Below are positions 19,111 to 61,410 of a stretch of 64,000 nt of DNA, in pieces. Made by a program: the position numbers and the translations under genes. Source of the DNA: Vitrella brassicaformis CCMP3155 (taxonomy: Eukaryota; Protista; Chromerida); assembly GCA_001179505.1 (NCBI GenBank), contig CDMY01000531.1, positions 1 to 64,000 of the forward strand. Reading direction: 5' to 3'. Position 1 is the first letter of the stretch; each line of letters opens with the position of its first letter. Under the pieces are notes generated by a model, which saw only the letters and a list, made by a program, of their open reading frames with translations, had not been told where the DNA came from and ran no database searches.

Positions 19111-19581
19111 GGAGACAGGAGTGTGTGCACGCCAGTACGTAGCGTCTTGGTCGTCCTGTGCAGTGCTCTTTCATGCCTAGCGCTCATGCAGTAGCTACTC
19201 TTGACTCTCTGTGCAGTCTGTGTCGAATTCACCCCGTGTGGTATATCGCAGTTGTGCTGGTCTGTTCTGGGCGGTTTTGCAGCCGAGTTTTTGGACACGT
19301 GAGGTGGATTGGGCGAGGTGATTGATGGTCCTGAATGATGTGAATTTCTGTCCTGCAGTGTGTTTACAAACCAACTTCTTAGCTCGCGCAATTCCCTTCC
19401 CTCCCCTCGCGCGTGGCTCCTTCCCCGACCCACACAGACACAGTCTTCCACATTGAGTGATGCGTTCTCGTGTCACTTCCAAGCTGATTGGCGCCGGCTC
19501 GTTCAACTTGGGGTGAGTATTGCCGAGCCCTCCGTTCGAATTCTGCCCAGGCAGATTGCCCTTCGAGACAACAAGCTGACC

Positions 19582-26374: not shown

Positions 26375-26383
26375 TTAGCTCGC
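26375..26383 (+). promoter_or_regulatory. Candidate upstream motif TTAGCTCGC (example instance)
   Basis: The same 9-mer occurs at 19379, 42818(-), 46277(-) and 56972, with close variants at 10821, 18004(-), 32887 and 50185, all in 5' intergenic gaps. Confidence 0.5.
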
Positions 26384-42763: not shown

Positions 42764-43423
42764 GTTGTCACTGGCGGCATGCGATGATGGAATCCGCGCA
42801 CTCTCCCCGACCCATCGGCGAGCTAAAAAGCTCACGATCCACTGTAAACGGAACGGCGGCGGCACATGACAGGCTGTGGCTAGATCCAGTAAAGCAAAGT
42901 AAAGTAATCTGGCGGCGGCAATGGAAAAAATTGTTGAAACAGCACCCCTGTCATCACCTCTCGAGTGAGTCCATTCACACAATCGCCAATGGCATTCATT
43001 CGTTGATGCACTCAATCCAACCAACAGCGGTGCTGGCCGTCTCGTCTAATTGAGCACCAGTGCATGGCATGCCCTCACCCACCTCCTCCCCCAGGCCACG
43101 CCATTCCATTGCACGTGTCACTCACTCATCTGGACAGGTATCCACAGAAAAAGGGCACACGCCGACCGAGGTCACGCCATGGCATGGACAGCGAAGCCAA
43201 GCGACACGAGCTGCCGTGCCCGTCTGTCTGTCTGCACGATGCCTGTGGCATTCATTGGACCGTTCACTAGTTATTCACAGCAGATGGAAGGGGAGCGGGG
43301 AGGAACAGAGGGAAGGAGGGAGGGGCAGGACAAGACAGAGAGGGAGGGAGAGAGAGATGCAGGAGGGAGGCAGATAAACAGGCGAAAAGAACCCGAAGAC
43401 ATGGGGATCGTTTCTTGGTTCGG

Positions 43424-46089
<2,666 letters not shown>

Positions 46090-46426
46090 GGTGGCTTCAC
46101 AGGCACTGCCTCACCGATCAGCAAGCACCGGACGCCTCGTCACAGCCCGTGACGAGTCAGAGGCCGATTTTTCTGCTTTTTCTTGCTGTTTGAAAGAGGT
46201 CACAAGCTCCTAGCACTGCTTCCTGTCCGCGACGAACCTCAAGGTCAAAACGGACCCGGCAGCAGCGGTTCAACTTGCGAGCTAATCTTGCTGGCGGATC
46301 GGCACTGTCTTCGGCGTCGCGCAACTTTCTGAGCTTGTTGTCGTGCTTAGAACATCGCCTCTCACAGCCCTGTGTTGTAGACATCGAAACACGACTCTTC
46401 AGCCTCCATTTGTAGCGTTGCGAACG

Positions 46427-51483: not shown

Positions 51484-53050
51484 CTAACGAATCCGGGCGA
51501 GTCTGTGAAGGAGCCGAGCGAGTCTGTCCTCCACAGACTCGCCTTGATTCGTGAGCACGTCAGCGGCCACGCACTTGGCGTCTGCAAAAAGAATGCACGC
51601 GTGAGTGATAGTGGTGGTGTCAAGGTCAATCCTGATTACCCGCCAGATTGTCTGCGTTCACACATTCGAACAGATACACTCATGGCTTTATGTGTGTGTG
51701 TGCCATTCATTGTGTGGGCGGTCGGTGCTCTTGATGGTGGCATGATGATAAGCAGGCGGCGGCCTCGACCCACTTTAGCGTGGATGACTATGTGGTCCAT
51801 TCAGTCACGCACGCATGTCAACATGACATGTGGCAAATACAACAACAACAGTCAAAGGCGATTCTTACCCAGACAGACACTCCAACACCCCACCCCCACC
51901 ACCAAGACACACAAAACCACACACACACCCCCAGCGCAAACTCACGCCCCGGCCATGTACTCGTCGAGGAGCTGATTGCGGAGGTGCCGACGGGCCTGCA
52001 CGCAGAGACCGACACGCAGACAACCAAGGGCGAAATACACGCACGAAGATAGCTTTGTGTGTGCGGCGAATTCACTCACCTTGTCCCTGCAGTAGGCTAT
52101 GTTCTCTGGTTTTGCTGTCCTTGTCGCCCTTGATGAGCTCCTCCACACGCCATGGTAGACGATGCGTGTATGTCTCTGCGTGTCTTGATTGATGGCGGAC
52201 GCACTTGGTCTCGAAGTCCTCTACCTCCTCTCTGACCTGAGTACGTCACGGCTGGACAGTGAGCCATGAGGCACATTAACGTGGGTACACATGTGTCAGT
52301 GCGCGTGTGCGTATCGCTTACAGGCCGCCGACCGTGCACTTCTTGGCCAGGTGCGCCAGGCTCTGCATCAGCCGCTGCAGCTCACTCTCCCGCCTCTCCA
52401 ACTTCTCGCGCAGCGCTCGCCCCTCTCCATCATCCCTCGCCCCTTCCGCCCCCATGACCACCTCCGCCCCGCCCGCCCGTCTGCTTCCATCTTGACACGG
52501 CCCTTGTCCGGCTCTCCACGCCCGTGATGGTACGCGACGGCTCGCGTATCTCCTCGTCGTCGCTGAGCTGGTCAGTGGTGATGAAGCGGGACCTCTTGCC
52601 GGGCCGCTGGTCGTCGGGCGCCTCCCTCTTGACCCCCACTGACGATGACGATGAGCCAGAGGGGCGGCCAGGGACATCGGTGTCCTCCATCTTGACCTCT
52701 GTGTTGCCCTCTTGCTGGTGCAGCTTCGACAGGAAGTCTTGCAGCGCCTTCTCGGGGTCACGACCTGCAGAAGCCAGACAGCAGGGGCACCCCTTTCGAT
52801 GAGAGTTTCGGTCATGGTGACGGCCAGTTCTTGTACCAGTGGATGTGTTTGTGGGGATTCGAGCATCGCAGATCCATCATTCCCCTCCTTCCTCTCTGAT
52901 CGCTGCGAGCCTGGCAAGGGAGAGCGACGGGCTGTGGTTGCGGCGGCTGCTGATCAGCGCTGCCTTTGCGACTGCTGCTTGCCACTGCTTGCCGCACGAG
53001 ACCTCCCGAACGCTGAACCTCTCAGGTGAGCGGCAGCCGTGGCGCAGCAA
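51484..53050 (-). CDS. Hypothetical, possibly decaying multi-exon gene (lineage-specific family)
   Basis: Coding-like exons ETLIERG|RDPEKALQDFLSKL..EVKMEDTD..KREAPDD, REKLERRESELQRL, ARRHLRNQLLDEYM. Frames cannot all be joined cleanly and one donor reads ATGAAT. Confidence 0.4.
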
Positions 53051-53456
53051 GCAAGGCATTGAGGCTGACACACACGAATGAATGAATAAATCATCTCCGT
53101 TCGACTTATCATTCTCCTGTTGTCCGTCTGTGTGTGTTTGCATCCGTCAGCTGGCGATGAACATCAGCGGCAGCCTGTGCGCCGTCGTTGATCGTGCGCC
53201 GTGACCGTGGGTGAGAGGAGGCATAGCGGGGACAAGTGGAGCGATAACACGCGCATTGCAGGGTACGTCCGCCCGGCAGAGAGGGAGGATACGACTGCAC
53301 ACCACTGCAGCTCTGCGTGTGTGTGTGTGTGTGTGTGTGCAGACTGTTCCACATCACCGGCGTGTGACGGCCTACGCTCGGCTACGCTGTGGTGTGGTGC
53401 CCGTGGTGTAGGACAGCTCGACTACTCGTCCCTCCCATAGCGACACCCACACGCAC

Positions 53457-54812
53457 ATGGAGATGGACACAACTTTTGGCGTTGAGGCTTTGGTAGTTCT
53501 CGGTCTTCTTGACGTCATACGCCTCCTCGCGTGTGCCGTCCGCGGTGTTCGTCGTCATGCCAGCTTCCCCCTTCTCAATGTCGCTGGCGTGGTGGTCGCA
53601 CATGCAAGACTGATCATCGCCATACTCCTCTGTAAGAAGCGATACAAGCACAGCAATGCAATGGCAGAGTCCCGACTCCTCTCGTCTCCGTGTGTGTGCT
53701 TCTCCCTTCCAGATGTGTACTCGGAGCGGGGTGGTTCTGGGGTCGAGTCGCTGATGGACATATTCCTGAGCCCCTTCTTCCACGCCCTTGCCCTCATCCT
53801 CGCGCTCGTATTCTTCCCTCAGACGCCTCCCGACGCCGACAGACAACACGCCGACATCTTTGAGAGCGTCAAAAAACAATCCGCCGCCATCTCTGAGATC
53901 TGGGGCATCCAGCTGCCCCGCGATTTGCCTCGCCTCTGCTTCATGAATCGCCAGCAAATAGATGACTTGCTGAAGCACGCCCGGATACTGCAGGAGTCTG
54001 CGGTGATGCTTAACAAGCTGCGGCAAGTCGTGGAGCGTGCCATCAATGCCGCCCTCAAGCCGCAGCGCGACATCGCCGCCCGCATCGGCTGCCTGCTGCC
54101 CATGGTGCCGCACCACGATGACGGCACGGATCAGCCGGTGGACGGCGAGACGTATCGCCTGACCTACAAGCACCACGGCGAGTCACCCCACCACGACCCC
54201 CGCGACCTCACATTCGGTCCGTACGAGGCCACATCCATCGCCTGGAAGATCGGCGCATTTCTCCACGACCCGTCGGCTGCCCGTGCGGTCATCGGCGAGT
54301 ACCGCGACGACGACCTCATCGACGACGACCTCATCGACGACGACCTCATCGGCGACTGGCTTGATCCGCGGATCAAGCGCCGTGTGAGAGCCGCCGTCGA
54401 CCATTTCGTCAAGCAGGCGGCCACCAGGACGGCGAGCAACCGGGAGGTGGTGGGCAAGACCGAGAGGGGCGAGGGCGGACGGCCGGGGGGGGTGCTGGCT
54501 CGGTGGTGGGATCGTCTGAGGGGTGTGACGGGGGCTAAGGGTGTGACGGGGGATGGACAAGGCAAGCTGACGGTGCGCGTGCCGGCACTGCAGTGCTTCG
54601 CCATCCACGGAGAAGGACAGCATCCTCACAGGCGTCTCGGCGTGCCCGAGGTGGTGCATCGGGCGATCCTGGACGAGGTGGCCGCATACCGGATTAGCGG
54701 AGTCGTCAAGGGCTTCAACAGCCACTTGAGCGACACCGACTGCCAGTTCCAGTGGGGGCAGCTAGGCTACATCGACGAGTCGGGCTGCTTCGTATCGCTG
54801 GGCATCAACTAG
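53457..54812 (+). CDS. Lineage-specific repeat-family protein with N-terminal TM segments
   Basis: 451-aa ORF with a probable in-frame intron near 53631-53712 and three hydrophobic stretches. C-terminus RVPALQCFAI..RLGVPEVVHRAILDE..VVKGFN..QLGYIDESG..LGIN matches a C-terminal domain I recall from many Vitrella hypothetical proteins. Confidence 0.7.
   Translation: MEMDTTFGVEALVVLGLLDVIRLLACAVRGVRRHASFPLLNVAGVVVAHARLIIAILLCKKRYKHSNAMAESRLLSSPCVCFSLPDVYSERGGSGVESLMDIFLSPFFHALALILALVFFPQTPPDADRQHADIFESVKKQSAAISEIWGIQLPRDLPRLCFMNRQQIDDLLKHARILQESAVMLNKLRQVVERAINAALKPQRDIAARIGCLLPMVPHHDDGTDQPVDGETYRLTYKHHGESPHHDPRDLTFGPYEATSIAWKIGAFLHDPSAARAVIGEYRDDDLIDDDLIDDDLIGDWLDPRIKRRVRAAVDHFVKQAATRTASNREVVGKTERGEGGRPGGVLARWWDRLRGVTGAKGVTGDGQGKLTVRVPALQCFAIHGEGQHPHRRLGVPEVVHRAILDEVAAYRISGVVKGFNSHLSDTDCQFQWGQLGYIDESGCFVSLGIN
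54306..54350 (+). repeat. 15-nt coding tandem repeat x3 (DDDLI)
   Basis: GACGACGACCTCATC repeated three times exactly. Confidence 0.95.
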
Positions 54813-55902
54813 GAAGGATGGGATGGGAGGGAGGGGGGAGCCTGGACGGTCCGTAGCTTAAAGGGGGCTGGGCATGTCGTGTCATGTCTGTCTGTCTGCC
54901 TGTCTGTCTGCCTTGTCGCCTGTCCGTCTGGCCGTCTTGTCTGGTTGTGAGAGCAAAGTGTGCTTTGCCACCTAGGCGGCGCACAAGCAACACGACCCCC
55001 CTCTTGGTCTGTCTGTCCCACTGTGGGTGTCGGCTGGCGGGTTTTTGTGGTACGTTGTGTGGCTTGGTGTGCGCCTGCCTGACGACTGACTGTGGATGAA
55101 CGCCCGGTCAGTGGTGATCTGTTTTGCCTACCTGTGCATTCATACGGCCTCTGCCTGCGGTAAGCGTCGTGTTATGGGGTGTGTTGCTGGCTGGCGCCTT
55201 CCCGTTTCGTGATGCATTGGTTGACGTCTTCTCGTGCTGGCGACCCAATCAGCTCGAGGATGCGTCAACCGATGCCGCGTGAGACGGAAAGACCCTTCCC
55301 GACGCATCCACAAATGGACAACAAATCCCAGTGGGTGGGTGCATGTGTATAGCTTCGTCAGACTTGCATGGCTGTGTGGGGGCGTGGGTGGACGGCGTCG
55401 CACATGTATATACCTAAACACTTAAGGAACATCCCCAAAGGAACATCCCCAAATATAGCTAGCCCTCGATCGGATGCGAAAATCGCCGCCGCCTCTGACA
55501 TGCCCAGAGAGCGCGCGCGTGTGTGTGCGTGTGTGTCCGTTGTGAATGAATGAAGATCGCTAATATACATCTGGATGAATGGATGGACACTTCGGACGGT
55601 ATTTCCGATCAGTGCACCAGCTGCGATTGTCATCTCACGGATGGACGCGCACACGCGCACGCAAGTATGCGTCTCTCGACACGTCTGCCCACCACACGAG
55701 CATTGTCTGCCGGCCGGTCTTTGCTGAACATGTGTGGAAAAAAGGAGGGCCAGACGGGCAGGCAGCAACGTCTCTCTCCTCATCCATCCATCCATCCATT
55801 CTTTCTGTCAGTCCGTCAGTCGCTGTGTGGGTGCTCCCACGTGCAGCCCTCGTGTGGCTTCATGGCCAAAGTTTTATGGCCTTTGCCACGTGCCACAGAC
55901 GG

Positions 55903-56901
55903 CTAGGAGAATGACGAACACGGGCAGCCCGCCGGGGATGAATGCACCCCAATCTTCCGTCGGCACCTTCTTCTCCTTCATGAGCACGTCATACTCCAGC
56001 ACATCCTACAGACACACAAGACAGACAGACAGCACGCACACGTCGGTTGGTTTTCCTGGCTTCTCTCTCTCGGTGTGTACCATGCCGTAGAGGGAAATGT
56101 CGTCGAACACGAAGCCGGCATGATGAGCAAGTCTCTCTTTGTACCTCATTCGAGCACGCCTTGATGTGTAGATACTTTTCTTGGCCGTCGGCTTGCCGCC
56201 TCAGCTTCTAATGGCCCTGCAGGGCAAAATGCATCGAAGCCTGTGAGCGCATTTACGCAGGCAATACTGTCTACCGTGACGGCTGGGCCCGAGCAGAAGT
56301 CGCATTTCATGCTCGCCCACGGTGACGGCAGGGCAGCAGAGCGGGCAGTGTTGGTGTTGGTGGGGGCGGTCTGTTTGTGTGCAGCAGCGAGTGTCTTGCA
56401 CGCCTCCTTGTGGCCTCTGTCACGCCAATCGACCAGCTGACACTCCTGCATGGACACAAGAAGGAAGACAACCCACAGGTCCCCCTCCATTCATTTCTGT
56501 CGTCCATGTGTGTTCCACTGCTGACCTTGGAGCAGTACACACGCCGGTAGCAGCTCCCGCAACGCTGAAATCGACACAAGGCAACACCATGTGCCCCTCT
56601 TTCCCCTATTCGCCTCCTCTCTCTCTCTTGTCGACACCTTCGGCTGTGTCACCCTCTTGGAGCAGACGTCACATACCGACGCAGTCGATACACCATCACC
56701 ACCTCCAGCGACTCACCGCCATCTGGCAAGCCTGCGTGAGCAGATCAATGGATACGGAGAGGAGCCTGGCCGGTACTGCGGTTGGTTTGAACGTACCATG
56801 GTGGCCTTATTCTTGCAGAAGTAGCACTCCATGCCAGCAGCAGCCGCAGAGCTGCTGGACTGGCGCTGCTGCTTGCATTTGGACGTTTTCGCTCGCTGCA
56901 T
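55903..56901 (-). CDS. MYND-type zinc-finger protein, multi-exon
   Basis: Spliced CDVCSKRVTQPK|RCGSCYRRVYCSK|ECQLVDWRDRGHKEACK fits the MYND pattern. Last exon DVLEYDVLMKEKK..CPCSSFS*. The join of the 5' exons is uncertain. Confidence 0.75.
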
Positions 56902-57023
56902 CGTCGGAGATGCTCGAAACAACAAAAATGATGGGGAAAGGGGACGGTATGTAAACGGAACGACTGCAAGCTTAGCTCGCGTTGAGCGGGCGAGGAAGAG
57001 GAGCCGTTCATGCCTGTATAGCG

Positions 57024-58120
57024 ATGGTGATGATGCAGAGGACTCTCTCTCAATTGATAGTCCGTCTTTCCCTTATCTTGCTCACTCAAGCTGTCGGTGG
57101 CGTCCTGGGAGTCGTCACAAGCCTCAAGGCATCATCATTAGCATCGCGAAGGGCGGCTCCCACTACATCTTCTCTCGGCTTTGTCGGATCTTCATTGGCG
57201 AGCGTCAGATCTGCGGACCACCTCGCGCACAAGACTCCCTATCGCTCTGCTCGGCCCCTGTTCTCCGGACCGTCATCGCCTAATGTGAAGCAGCAGCCAC
57301 AGCCGCAGGCGAGCGATACGGTGGATCCGCGCATTGTGGAGCGCGTCAACGCGGAGCTGGGTGCCCGGTTCAACATCGATGTGGATCAGCTGATGAACCC
57401 ACTCAAGGTGCTGGGCCTGGAGCAGGAGCTAGAGACCCTCAACGCCGAGATGGAGACCCTCAAGGCCAAGCCGCAGATGGCCGAGGTGCAGGCAGCCATA
57501 GTCGAGCTAGACCAGACCATCACCAAGAAGTAGAATATCCTCGAGGCCGAGAAGGCCTTGTACGTCAGGGGCTGGCTCAAGGCCGTGTTTCTGGGGAAGT
57601 CAGCACTCGCGGCGGTCATCAGTGGGATGCTGGTGTACAACAACGTGCCTGGCGTGGGTGAGGTGGAGGTGGACCTCTCGCTGCAGTTTTTGGGGGTCTA
57701 GAACTGGTGGCTGTTCATCATCCCTTCATTGTGGGCTCGCAAGCCCGTCAAGAAGGAGAAGAGGGCGCTCGACTGGGCATTTTTGGCCGTCTTGGTGACC
57801 ACACTCGCCGCGCCGTCGTTCACCAAGGTAAGAAGACAGACACGCATCTCTGCTCGTGGATTCATCTCCTTGTGTGGTGTGTGTCGTTCAGAGCCGTCGA
57901 CCATCCAATGGACCAACGCTGCCGTCCTCGGCATCTCTTATGCCATCAGCTCCAGCGCTCCCTTTCCCCTTTTCGACCAGGGCGACGCCCAGCAGGAGGA
58001 GCAGGAGGGCCCCGAGTGGCTGAGCTGGTGAATACACACAGCGACATTCACACATTCACCCATCCATCCACAATGCCTGTCTGTCTGGGTGTGTGCAGGT
58101 GTGGAGTGCGATGGACGAGC
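57024..58120 (+). pseudogene. RPH1-like plastid membrane protein gene with two in-frame TAG codons (pseudogene or recoded gene)
   Basis: Signal+transit leader and coiled coil, then RGWLKAVFLG..LQFLGV*NWWLFIIPSLWARKPVKKEKRALDWAFL, which resembles plant RPH1 WMFTIPSLRAR..KKEKEALN (from memory). TAG at 57531-57533 and 57699-57701. Confidence 0.65.
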
Positions 58121-58696
58121 CCACCGAGAAGGTAGCAGCGTTGTGGGTGGCTCTGCTCCGCGTGCCCGTGGCGAGTCGGCATGCGGCTGCCTTCGGCAAA
58201 CAGGATGTCGTCATGACATTCCGACAGGGCGACATGGCTGCTGCTGACAAAATCGCCGCCATCCTCCTGGGCAAGGAGTACGCTCGATACCTGTCGCCAG
58301 ATGAACGGTGAACACGCACATAAGCTGCACGCACAGACATGATGGCGAGAGGTGGGTATGCATGTTGTCAGGAGCCGCATCGAGTGGCTGACAGGGGTTG
58401 TCGCATCACAGCGGAGCGGCAATGAGTCATTCCTCTCCGGCGTGTGCCCGGCCCCTCGCTGCAACGGGTTCCTGTCCGCCCTGGTATGGCGGTGTCACTC
58501 ATGCGGTGCGCGAGTGGCCCTATGCAGCCTGACGCTGAGACTAGAGCTGCCTGAAGACATGACGAGGTGCCCTGTGTGTGACGCGGCGTACTCGTCGAAC
58601 GTCATCTCTCCCGCTGGCGGGCTGTGCGCGTATTGCGGTGTGGGTGTGTGCCGAGATCGATTAAGCAGGCGGAAGGGCTGCTTTCGTATTGAGTGA
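58099..58696 (+). CDS. Two in-phase exons encoding a Cys-rich zinc-binding module
   Basis: ..YLSPDER|SRIEWL..CPAPRC..RCHSCG..LCSLT..RCPVCD..LCAYCG..*. Intron 58310-58372 is canonical and in phase. No own start codon. Confidence 0.5.
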
Positions 58697-59008
58697 GCTC
58701 TGTGACCTTGACGAGTGCATGGCCGATCGCGTGGCTGAAGACCGCTGCCGTCTGCTCGCCCGGCGTGTCAAGGGACACCACAGCAGCTGCAAACGCGAGT
58801 GACTGATTGAGTGACTTGTGCATCGATCATGTACGTGGGGCACGTGTACGCATAACGTCTATATCGCCTGTACATACGTAATCGTCTGTACACGATCTTG
58901 ATTTGCATCGACTAGCAAACAAAGAAACAAACAAACAAACAAATCTGTTTCATCGTTCATCGGCTGACTGCCTGGCTGAGTGACGGGCTGACGATCAATC
59001 AATCGACG

Positions 59009-61410
59009 ATGGGCGCCTGCACGATGACGCTCGCTCTGCTGTGTGTGTTGGCGTTGCTGGCCGGTCCTTGGTGTGTGTCGTGCCAGCAGCCTCCCTCCAA
59101 CATCGACAGAGGGTCAGCCAGACGCACACAGACAGACAGACAGACACACGCACACAAGGAGTGTATGTCTCCATTCCATATGTGTGTGTGTCTGTCTGTC
59201 TGTGTGCGTGTTTGTATGTGGGTGCAGGGAGTTTGCGTCGGCCACTGAAGGAGAGGAGGTCAGTGACACCACAGACACACACACTCACACACACACACTC
59301 TCACTCTCACTCTCACTCACATGTGAATCATGTTTGTCTCTGTGTCTCTATCTGATCATGTGAATCAGGTGCGCCAAGAGGTCCGTCGACAGGTCGAAGG
59401 GATGGAGGACGCGATTGCCGAGCAGGCACGACTCAGGCAGCGAAGCGGCAATGTCTGGAGCATGCACGGAGCCCCTCTCTTCGTCCCCGCCGTCCCACCC
59501 GCCCTCTCTGCCTCGAGCATGGGCATGATGCCTCCGAGTGGCGTCATGACGCAACCAGCTCCCGGGCAGAACCAACTCAACCTCAACCTCGGCCCCACCC
59601 AGTACAGCCCCTCGCCGTACACCGTCCAGCGCCCAATGTCGTTCCGGCAGATCGACACACCCGCCGCGAGTGTGAGTGCCAGTGACCCTGTGGCCGGCTC
59701 TCTGTTGGCCACCGACGGATTCATGCCAACGACAGCAGTGGGCGATGGTGAAGACGATGGCACGTCGACCAAGAACAACGGCATCATAGGCAACGGCATC
59801 AGCCAGGTGTGCACCACACACAGACAGGCAGGGAGACACACAAACCAAAGTCTATGTGTGACGGATGTCTTTGTGATTGATGTCAGCTTGAGGATGTGGC
59901 GGGCGGCGACAAACAAGAGACACGTGACGAAGACGACAATGGCCAACGAGTAAGTCGATGAAACGAACCTCTCACACACGACACACATGAATGAATGAAT
60001 GAATGAATGAAATGTGTTTGTTGTGTGTTTTCTCAGTCTGATGTGTCAGAGGGTGCGGCAAGTGACGAGTCAGCATCCACAACCACAACCACAACCACAA
60101 TGGCCACCACCAACACCAGCAGCAAAGGGGACGGCCGCTTCACTCCGATGACACTGGTACGCCATCGCATGACTGACATTCTGCATGAAACATGTCTGTG
60201 TCAGAACGCGTTCCATATGTACGTCAAATTTATACTCGGCCTGCAAAACTCGTCGAAAACCGAGGCACGCAGAGACGACACCACAGGGCCTCGATGGATG
60301 CGACATTCATGTTTTCGTGTGATGTGTGCAGCGCCCGCTCAGTGTCGGAGGGCATGCAGACGCAGCTGCGTCGGATCTCATGGGCGGCGGCGGCTTTTGG
60401 GGTGGCGACCCCTTCTTCATCTTCCCGCCCAAGGGTAAACACTGAAGGCGTGCCGACAGCAGAAGCAGCAGATGAATCGATGGATGTCTTATAGGCAAGA
60501 TGATCACCGTGGCCGATCACTTGAGAGAGGTGGCAGTCATGATGATGCGGGGCACTCAGGCCGTTCAGGTGGTGAACTCCGATGAGGAGGGCGAGACCGA
60601 TCCGCGGAGTGGTGAGCAGCACACATGACACACACACACACACACACACACAGTGACTGACACATGTGTTGGTGGCTGTTTGAATGCGTGTGTGAATGCA
60701 GCCAACCTGGCGGGTAATCAGGATTGACGTTGACACCATCACTATCACTCATCCGTGCATTCTTCTTGCAGCGGCCAAGTGCAAGGCCGTCGAGGCCGCT
60801 AACGCGCTGGACAGCAAGGGCGAGTCGCCGCTCACTGGCGTAAGTCAGCACGGATGCACAAACGCATGCAGAGTCTATTCCTTATTCTCTGCGTGTGTGT
60901 TCAGGCGAGAAGAAGGGCTGGCAGACGACACGGAACAAGAGAGGAGAGCGAAAACGAGCTGATAAACGAGGTCTGACACCCAGTCAGACAGTCAGACAGC
61001 CCTTTGCATGTTATGTGTGTTTGTATGTTGTGCAGATGCTCAAGTTCGCTCTGCAGCTTTTTCAGGGCGAAGAGAAGCGCCAAGGCCGCCAGCCGCACGC
61101 CACCTGGACTAAGATGAATGAACTGCTCAGGGCGTTCAAAATCTACGCGAAGGGGGTCATGAGTAAGGACGCACACAAGGAATCATCGTGTGTGCGTGCA
61201 TCCCGTGCATGCATTTTGATTTGCGTGTGTGCGCGTTAAGGCTCGGAGGACTGGTCGGCACCCGCTCCAGCCGCTGCGTCGTCGTCAAGTGCCCCCGCCG
61301 CCGACCAGCCCCCCGCCCAAGAGCAACCCGCAAGCCAGCCGCCCGCCGAGCAGACCGCACCTGCCGAGCAGACCGCACCGCGGTTCGAACTGCCGTGGTT
61401 CATAGGCTAA
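59009..61410 (+). CDS. Secreted/surface hypothetical protein, multi-exon including a 12-nt microexon
   Basis: Signal peptide MGACTMTLALLCVLALLAGPWCVSC. Exons join in phase through DLMGGGGFWGGDPFFIFPPKG|KMITVADHL..|ANLA|AKCKAVEAA..|..NELINE|MLKFALQL..|..FELPWFIG*. Confidence 0.65.

Follow-up and report, generated by a model that had tools for sequence, protein, structure and literature searches.

A probably transcribed, 3'-truncated duplicate with two in-frame TAG codons and its intact paralog in Vitrella brassicaformis CCMP3155

Unprocessed pseudogenes in segmental duplications are the closest described counterpart of the locus reported here. They share with it a DNA-level copy that includes flank, promoter and intron, an intact parent nearby on the contig, lesions of the nonsense, frameshift and truncation kinds, relaxed constraint on one of the two copies, and continued (here probable) transcription. 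The four marks of such a pseudogene (intact parent, DNA-level copy, disabling lesions and relaxed selection) were all found at this locus, and the sole unusual detail was that the truncation lands precisely on the intron donor of a second duplicated gene fragment, to which it is joined. A second system with some resemblance, stop-loss A-to-I editing of mRNA (UAG>UGG), has been described for fungal sexual stages. In both cases a premature UAG takes the place of a conserved Trp codon, and the gene is (here probably) transcribed; here, however, the RNA-derived sequence was unedited, the other UAG replaces a Glu codon, an intact paralog is present, and other disabling lesions accompany the stops.

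The window, that is, the whole stretch of DNA that was analysed, comprised 64,000 nt at the start of contig CDMY01000531.1 (hereafter C531). Its segment 57024-58028 is, with high probability, an unprocessed pseudogene, 3'-truncated and probably transcribed, whose end is joined out of frame to part of a second duplicated gene. The original prediction had described a plastid gene resembling RPH1 with two in-frame TAG codons, for which editing or recoding was held to be worth testing and a young pseudogene or an assembly error was given as the simplest reading. The parts of the window copy were as follows.

56713..57023, + strand: duplicated 5' flank, the likely promoter, 7.5% divergent from the paralog flank, with TTAGCTCGC at 56972-56980
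57024..57827, + strand: exon 1 of the decayed copy, with the hydrophobic leader, the coiled-coil region and the first membrane segments
57531-57533, + strand: TAG#1, in the context AAG-TAG-AAT; GAG (Glu) in the paralog; upstream of all membrane segments of the family
57699-57701, + strand: TAG#2, in the context GTC-TAG-AAC; TGG in the paralog and Trp in 131/131 homologues
57828..57891, + strand: intron 1, GT-AG, 64 nt, homologous to the 60-nt in-frame GC-AG intron of the paralog
57892..58027, + strand: truncated exon 2, homologous to the paralog as far as ...EWLSW

A single frame with two in-frame TAGs was confirmed, beginning with an ATG at 57024 and covering 57024-58028. Frame 0 of the window copy extended from 56982 to a TGA at 58029 and was interrupted solely by the two TAGs, each of which lies one base off the sense codon of the paralog (GAG>TAG and TGG>TAG, respectively). 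Translation of the window copy would end after 169 residues, ahead of every membrane segment. The proposed position of TAG#2 at a conserved Trp was borne out by the TGG of the paralog and by W in all 131 homologues, within the family motif LGFWxWWLFIIPSLRARKP; the motif named in the original prediction, GMWSIWMF, was not the one that the family shows. The suggestion that Gln or Lys would fit at TAG#1 did not hold, as the paralog encodes Glu (GAG) at this site and Glu is also the commonest residue in the family (62/131; 47%). Further, the AAY context shared by the two stops, which had been listed among the reasons to test for editing or recoding, is a coincidence, because the AAT following TAG#1 is private to the window copy, the paralog having AAG at this place.

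Exactly two copies of the gene were detected in the 72.7-Mb assembly of 1064 contigs by searches with protein pieces, DNA and a family profile. The second copy is the intact paralog for which a genome search had been advised; it was found at C531:150986-152902, on the same contig as the window copy and 94 kb apart from it, and contained no stops. With the family profile, the window copy scored 168 bits with 2 TAG, and the paralog 191 + 42 bits with 0 stops. The open frame of the paralog comprises 638 codons, corresponding to 618 aa after removal of the 60-nt intron. The spliced sequence was identical to NCBI CEM20875.1 and UniRef A0A0G4FZ29, and the same sequence was recovered as the ORF of an MMETSP transcript. 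The paralog is intact and expressed. Nucleotide alignment of the two copies over 57024-58028 gave an identity of ~91%. Exact-product look-ups with the first piece of the window copy and with CEM20875.1 returned no contig. Two pattern scans of metagenome contigs for strings specific to the window copy (in exon 2, and at TAG#2 with R for the A) gave no match either; as the scanned collection also lacks contig L028, described below, these blanks carry no information.

The paralog intron (60 nt, in-frame, GC-AG, in the C531:151793-151852 region) is shown to be spliced by both cDNA and the annotated protein. At the homologous intron, the donor was a canonical GT in the window copy and GC in the paralog.

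Comparison of the window with the rest of contig C531 up to 282 kb by blastn showed that the gene copy is part of a larger duplicated segment and that a second, unrelated duplicated segment follows it.

53023..58028, + strand: block A, a copy of C531:144793-151990 in the same orientation, at 81-96% identity with large indels (blastn)
58035..60142, + strand: block B, copied from a different gene and truncated at the 5' end (C531:260316-257860 on the reverse strand, 85-98% identity)
58027..58028, + strand: fusion point of blocks A and B, with the 2-nt microhomology GG, at the same place as the GTGAAY splice donor in the block-B gene
58028..58098, + strand: the predicted 'intron 2', 71 nt, copied from another gene

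The focal gene copy is located at the 3' end of block A, and its 5' flank, its intron and ~4 kb of upstream sequence were co-duplicated with it. Block B contains the stretch previously designated as exon 3 (58099-58311); its homology starts at 58035 by blastn and at 58028, the GTGAAY donor, on the alignment. The 3' truncation at 58027/58028 removes the invariant C-terminal motif ALDxGSGxERG, and the conserved continuation AFKALDFGSGQERG, together with the remaining ~300 codons of the paralog, was absent from the window. The wider region 52341-60142 was a patchwork of diverged copies (81-98% identity) from three places on C531, namely ~205.0 kb, 144.8-152.0 kb and 260.3-257.9 kb (reversed).

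Two 1-nt slips had been noticed, one at each presumed splice junction. The first proved to be a real lesion of this gene, a 1-nt deletion at the acceptor side of intron 1 (TTCAG/GAGCCG in the paralog vs TTCAG/AGCCG in the window copy). Splicing at the homologous acceptor AG (57890-57891) shifts the frame, and use of the alternative AG (57892-57893) would preserve it at the cost of one codon. At the second slip one G is indeed missing as well, but this site marks the fusion of two unrelated duplicated blocks and not an intron of the gene. The parent of 'intron 2' was identified at C531:260325-260253 on the minus strand as a 73-nt phase-0 intron (...LLTAQ/VWSAMDEPTEK). When 'intron 2' is spliced in the window, the product would read ...EWLSW-CGVRWTSPPRR-stop, which leaves the frame and terminates after 11 codons. 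The claim of retained introns stood for the first intron, which is missing from the cDNA-derived contig described below and from the annotated protein, and not for the second, which belongs to the other, fused gene.

The joint between blocks A and B lies within 2 nt of the splice donor of the second gene, so that a potential chimeric transcript would be one base out of frame. This position may be due to chance, or it may be a hint of the way in which chimeric genes arise here. A further reading, of very small probability, takes the locus for a transcribed chimera of two segmental duplications joined exactly at a splice donor. It would be exon shuffling by duplication-fusion caught one base short, with a transcript that might act on the expression of the parent gene or be restored in part through low-level editing or readthrough.

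Alignment and dN/dS calculation were performed with the joined reading of the window copy, with X placed at each break, whereas the exons were used separately in the searches; invariance was scored over 131 homologues. In exon 1, the lesions private to the window copy comprised two nonsense changes (GAG>TAG at 57531 and TGG>TAG at 57700), three replacements (Q>K, CAG>AAG, at 57597; F>V, TTT>GTC, at 57696-57698; R>W, AGG>TGG, at 57732) and an insertion of 6 nt (57660-57665). Across the homologues, 30 columns were invariant. The paralog kept 26 of these, and the 4 that it missed were shared with the window copy; the changes therefore predate the duplication. The window copy kept 17 columns, had lost 5 by truncation, and carried private changes at 4 (Q>K, F>V, W>stop and R>W), which corresponds to 4/30 private changes at invariant columns vs 0/30 in the paralog. 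Other private changes of the window copy were found at conserved aromatic and aliphatic positions. By this asymmetry, selection is relaxed on the window copy. Together, the intact paralog and the asymmetric decay at invariant sites support the young pseudogene that had been named as the simplest reading.

Divergence between the copies was 7.1% in exon 1, 2.9% in exon 2, 21% in the intron and 7.5% in the 5' flank. A pairwise dN/dS of 0.28 was obtained from 28.5 non-synonymous and 30.5 synonymous differences (dS 0.147). This value is below the expectation for a copy that was neutral since its birth and is, on its own, intermediate. The low ratio suggests an initial constrained period or gene conversion homogenising the copies. 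A mutation bias of the RIP-like type (G:C>A:T) was also considered and was rejected, as the differences between the copies comprised all mutation types.

RNA-derived evidence was provided by the public JGI protein P0040, which led to contig L028 (record 3300017148 / Ga0186167_102874, 2652 nt). This contig lacks the intron and is therefore cDNA-derived. Its sample is presumably a transcriptome, judging from the missing intron and from the JGI series to which it belongs. Site by site, L028 was a perfect mosaic of paralog, window copy and paralog, with 0 private variants.

L028 nt 1-372: paralog alleles
L028 nt 408-786: window copy, at 44/44 diagnostic sites (57401-57779), including T57531, A57700 and the 6-nt insertion
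L028 nt 825-2652: paralog, 100% identical

Both switch points fell inside stretches identical between the copies (35 and 38 nt), the pattern expected when an assembler merges two paralogues that are expressed together. In the MMETSP assembly, the ORF of the paralog also occurs in unmixed form. P0040 accordingly stems from a chimeric transcript contig; the 382-aa P0040 itself and its 179-aa and 47-aa neighbours on L028 are artefacts of the two TAGs of the pseudogene. Three conclusions follow from the mosaic: the TAGs are not genome-assembly errors, transcription of the window copy is probable, and its consensus RNA is unedited at both stops. At 57532 and 57700, where A>G changes had been proposed, the L028 consensus had A at both positions, a consensus being a sequence that hides minor edited fractions.

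These data bear on the view that the stops and slips are sequencing or assembly errors, or that the copy is a mis-assembled haplotype of one real gene. Although both slips lie in short G runs (GG>G and GGG>GG) and duplicated blocks are pieced together throughout this region, the copies differ at >60 sites plus indels, which is far above error rates. Moreover, the independent contig L028 reproduced the window alleles over 57401-57779 with both TAGs, within a coverage that excludes the two junctions. The assembly error raised in the original prediction is thus unlikely, with the same 44 diagnostic alleles, including those of both TAGs, present in an independent public contig, and an artefact of any of these kinds is highly improbable.

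Recoding, by A-to-I editing (UAG>UGG) or by readthrough, would yield a functional second isoform. It would be attractive in that UAG>UGG restores the invariant Trp exactly at TAG#2, in a copy that seems to be transcribed and for which the pairwise dN/dS is below 1. However, the RNA-derived contig had A at both positions, and editing of TAG#1 would produce Trp at a site that is Glu in the paralog. Even with both stops repaired, Q>K, F>V, R>W, the acceptor frameshift and the loss of the C-terminal motif would persist. With an intact paralog in the genome and an unedited RNA-derived sequence, the very observations that had been named as speaking against it, recoding is an explanation to which we attach almost no probability.

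A genome-wide TAG signal was also absent, and the number of TAGs matched the prediction from neutral decay. Genome-wide, 114 kinase-domain matches showed no TAG-only pattern that would indicate TAG reassignment; ~63% of the matches were without a stop, and the in-match stops comprised ~31 TGA, 13 TAG and 9 TAA. The occurrence of all three kinds is as expected from short introns read through. Reading TAG as sense lengthened ORFs no more than reading TAA as sense. In the coding sequence of the paralog, 4.0% of single-base changes create a stop, and TAG accounts for 75/112 (67%) of these. For 30-40 neutral substitutions, 1.2-1.6 stops are predicted, two-thirds of them TAG. Since neutral decay predicts this number of stops, mostly TAG, the two TAGs need no special explanation. 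In the GC-rich Vitrella genome, in-frame TAGs are an expected mark of decaying duplicates and not evidence for recoding, and by the same rule of thumb similar in-frame-TAG calls in Vitrella are of lower priority.

In the preferred reading as an unprocessed pseudogene, a segmental duplication of ~5 kb within the contig gave rise to a 3'-truncated copy of the CEM20875.1 gene, which retained the promoter, the leader and the first intron and is probably still transcribed. Later, the copy gained two nonsense substitutions, the 1-nt acceptor deletion and the 6-nt insertion, and three more of its invariant residues were replaced. At the 3' end it runs, out of frame, into the intron donor of a gene copied from elsewhere, and a full-length product cannot be made from it. 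The duplication, the lesions and their polarity, the intact and expressed paralog and the TAGs in cDNA-derived sequence were observed directly. The window copy itself is likely to be non-functional, and its transcript is probably a by-product that is not translated or is prone to decay. A pseudogene annotation is therefore appropriate for the locus, which should not be hidden behind invented introns; it has little import beyond annotation hygiene.

Residual function, in the form of a regulatory RNA for the parent, a peptide consisting of the 169-residue leader and coiled coil, or a nascent chimeric gene, was also weighed. The promoter, start codon and leader are kept, the alleles occur in cDNA-derived data at a level high enough for the assembler's choice, and the fusion falls exactly on a usable splice donor. 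On the other hand, the chimeric splice loses the frame and meets a stop after 11 codons, nothing in these comparisons shows selection on the truncated product, and transcription is the default for young duplicates with intact promoters. Such a function is therefore very unlikely.

Exon 1 of the paralog belongs to a well-conserved family of membrane proteins of ~250-340 aa from haptophytes, ochrophytes and metagenomes, which was defined here by three word-index protein searches. All named homologues, from haptophytes and ochrophytes, are 'hypothetical protein'. The family is characterised by the motif LGFWxWWLFIIPSLRARKP and the C-terminal ALDxGSGxERG. Pfam scans of five pieces and of the neighbouring ORFs gave nothing significant, and the family is without a Pfam model.

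RPH1 (At2g48070), after which the gene had been labelled, is listed as GreenCut CPLD33 (PMC2947710); members of the CPLD class are defined by their conservation in plants and diatoms. Among the 120 matches listed per profile search, no named or plant members were found, and the listed matches were algal. The nearest Atlas clusters were of Bacillariophyta and Chlorophyta, which is consistent with the distribution of CPLD without being specific to it. The family of CEM20875.1 is possibly RPH1/CPLD33, with a distribution that fits this candidate and proves nothing.

With CEM20875.1 and the algal family, the window copy shares the leader, the coiled coil and the first membrane segments, and it matches the family profile (168 bits). 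It differs from them in its 2 stops, the 4 private changes at invariant residues, an insertion of 2 residues and the lack of the C-terminal motif. A functional member would be expected to keep the invariant residues and ALDxGSGxERG, whereas in the window copy 17/30 columns were kept and the motif was absent from the window.

The paralog contained ~300 extra C-terminal residues (C531:151991-152902) past the usual end of the family (618 vs ~250-340 aa). This extension contained stretches of low complexity and, close to the C-terminus, one more hydrophobic segment, and had 0 Pfam matches.

The leader, predicted to be intact, was indeed kept in the window copy, along with the promoter and the start codon. 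The annotated first ATG of the paralog was not conserved in the window copy, and the ATG three codons further on (57024) was conserved. The upstream motif that had been pointed out was also present: TTAGCTCGC is located at 56972-56980 and was enriched, with 5 occurrences in the window vs 0.2 expected. The other sites were 19379-19387 (+), 26375-26383 (+), 42818-42826 (-) and 46277-46285 (-), and several TTAGCTCGC sites had TTTAC/GTAAAC ~20-25 nt upstream. Genome-wide, the 11-mer GCTTAGCTCGC occurred 346 times vs 33 times for the reversed control. In Vitrella, the TTAGCTCGC/GCTTAGCTCGC motif is thus a candidate element of the core promoter or the transcription start. In addition, the cDNA-derived contig L028 starts 5 nt past the TTAGCT of the paralog.
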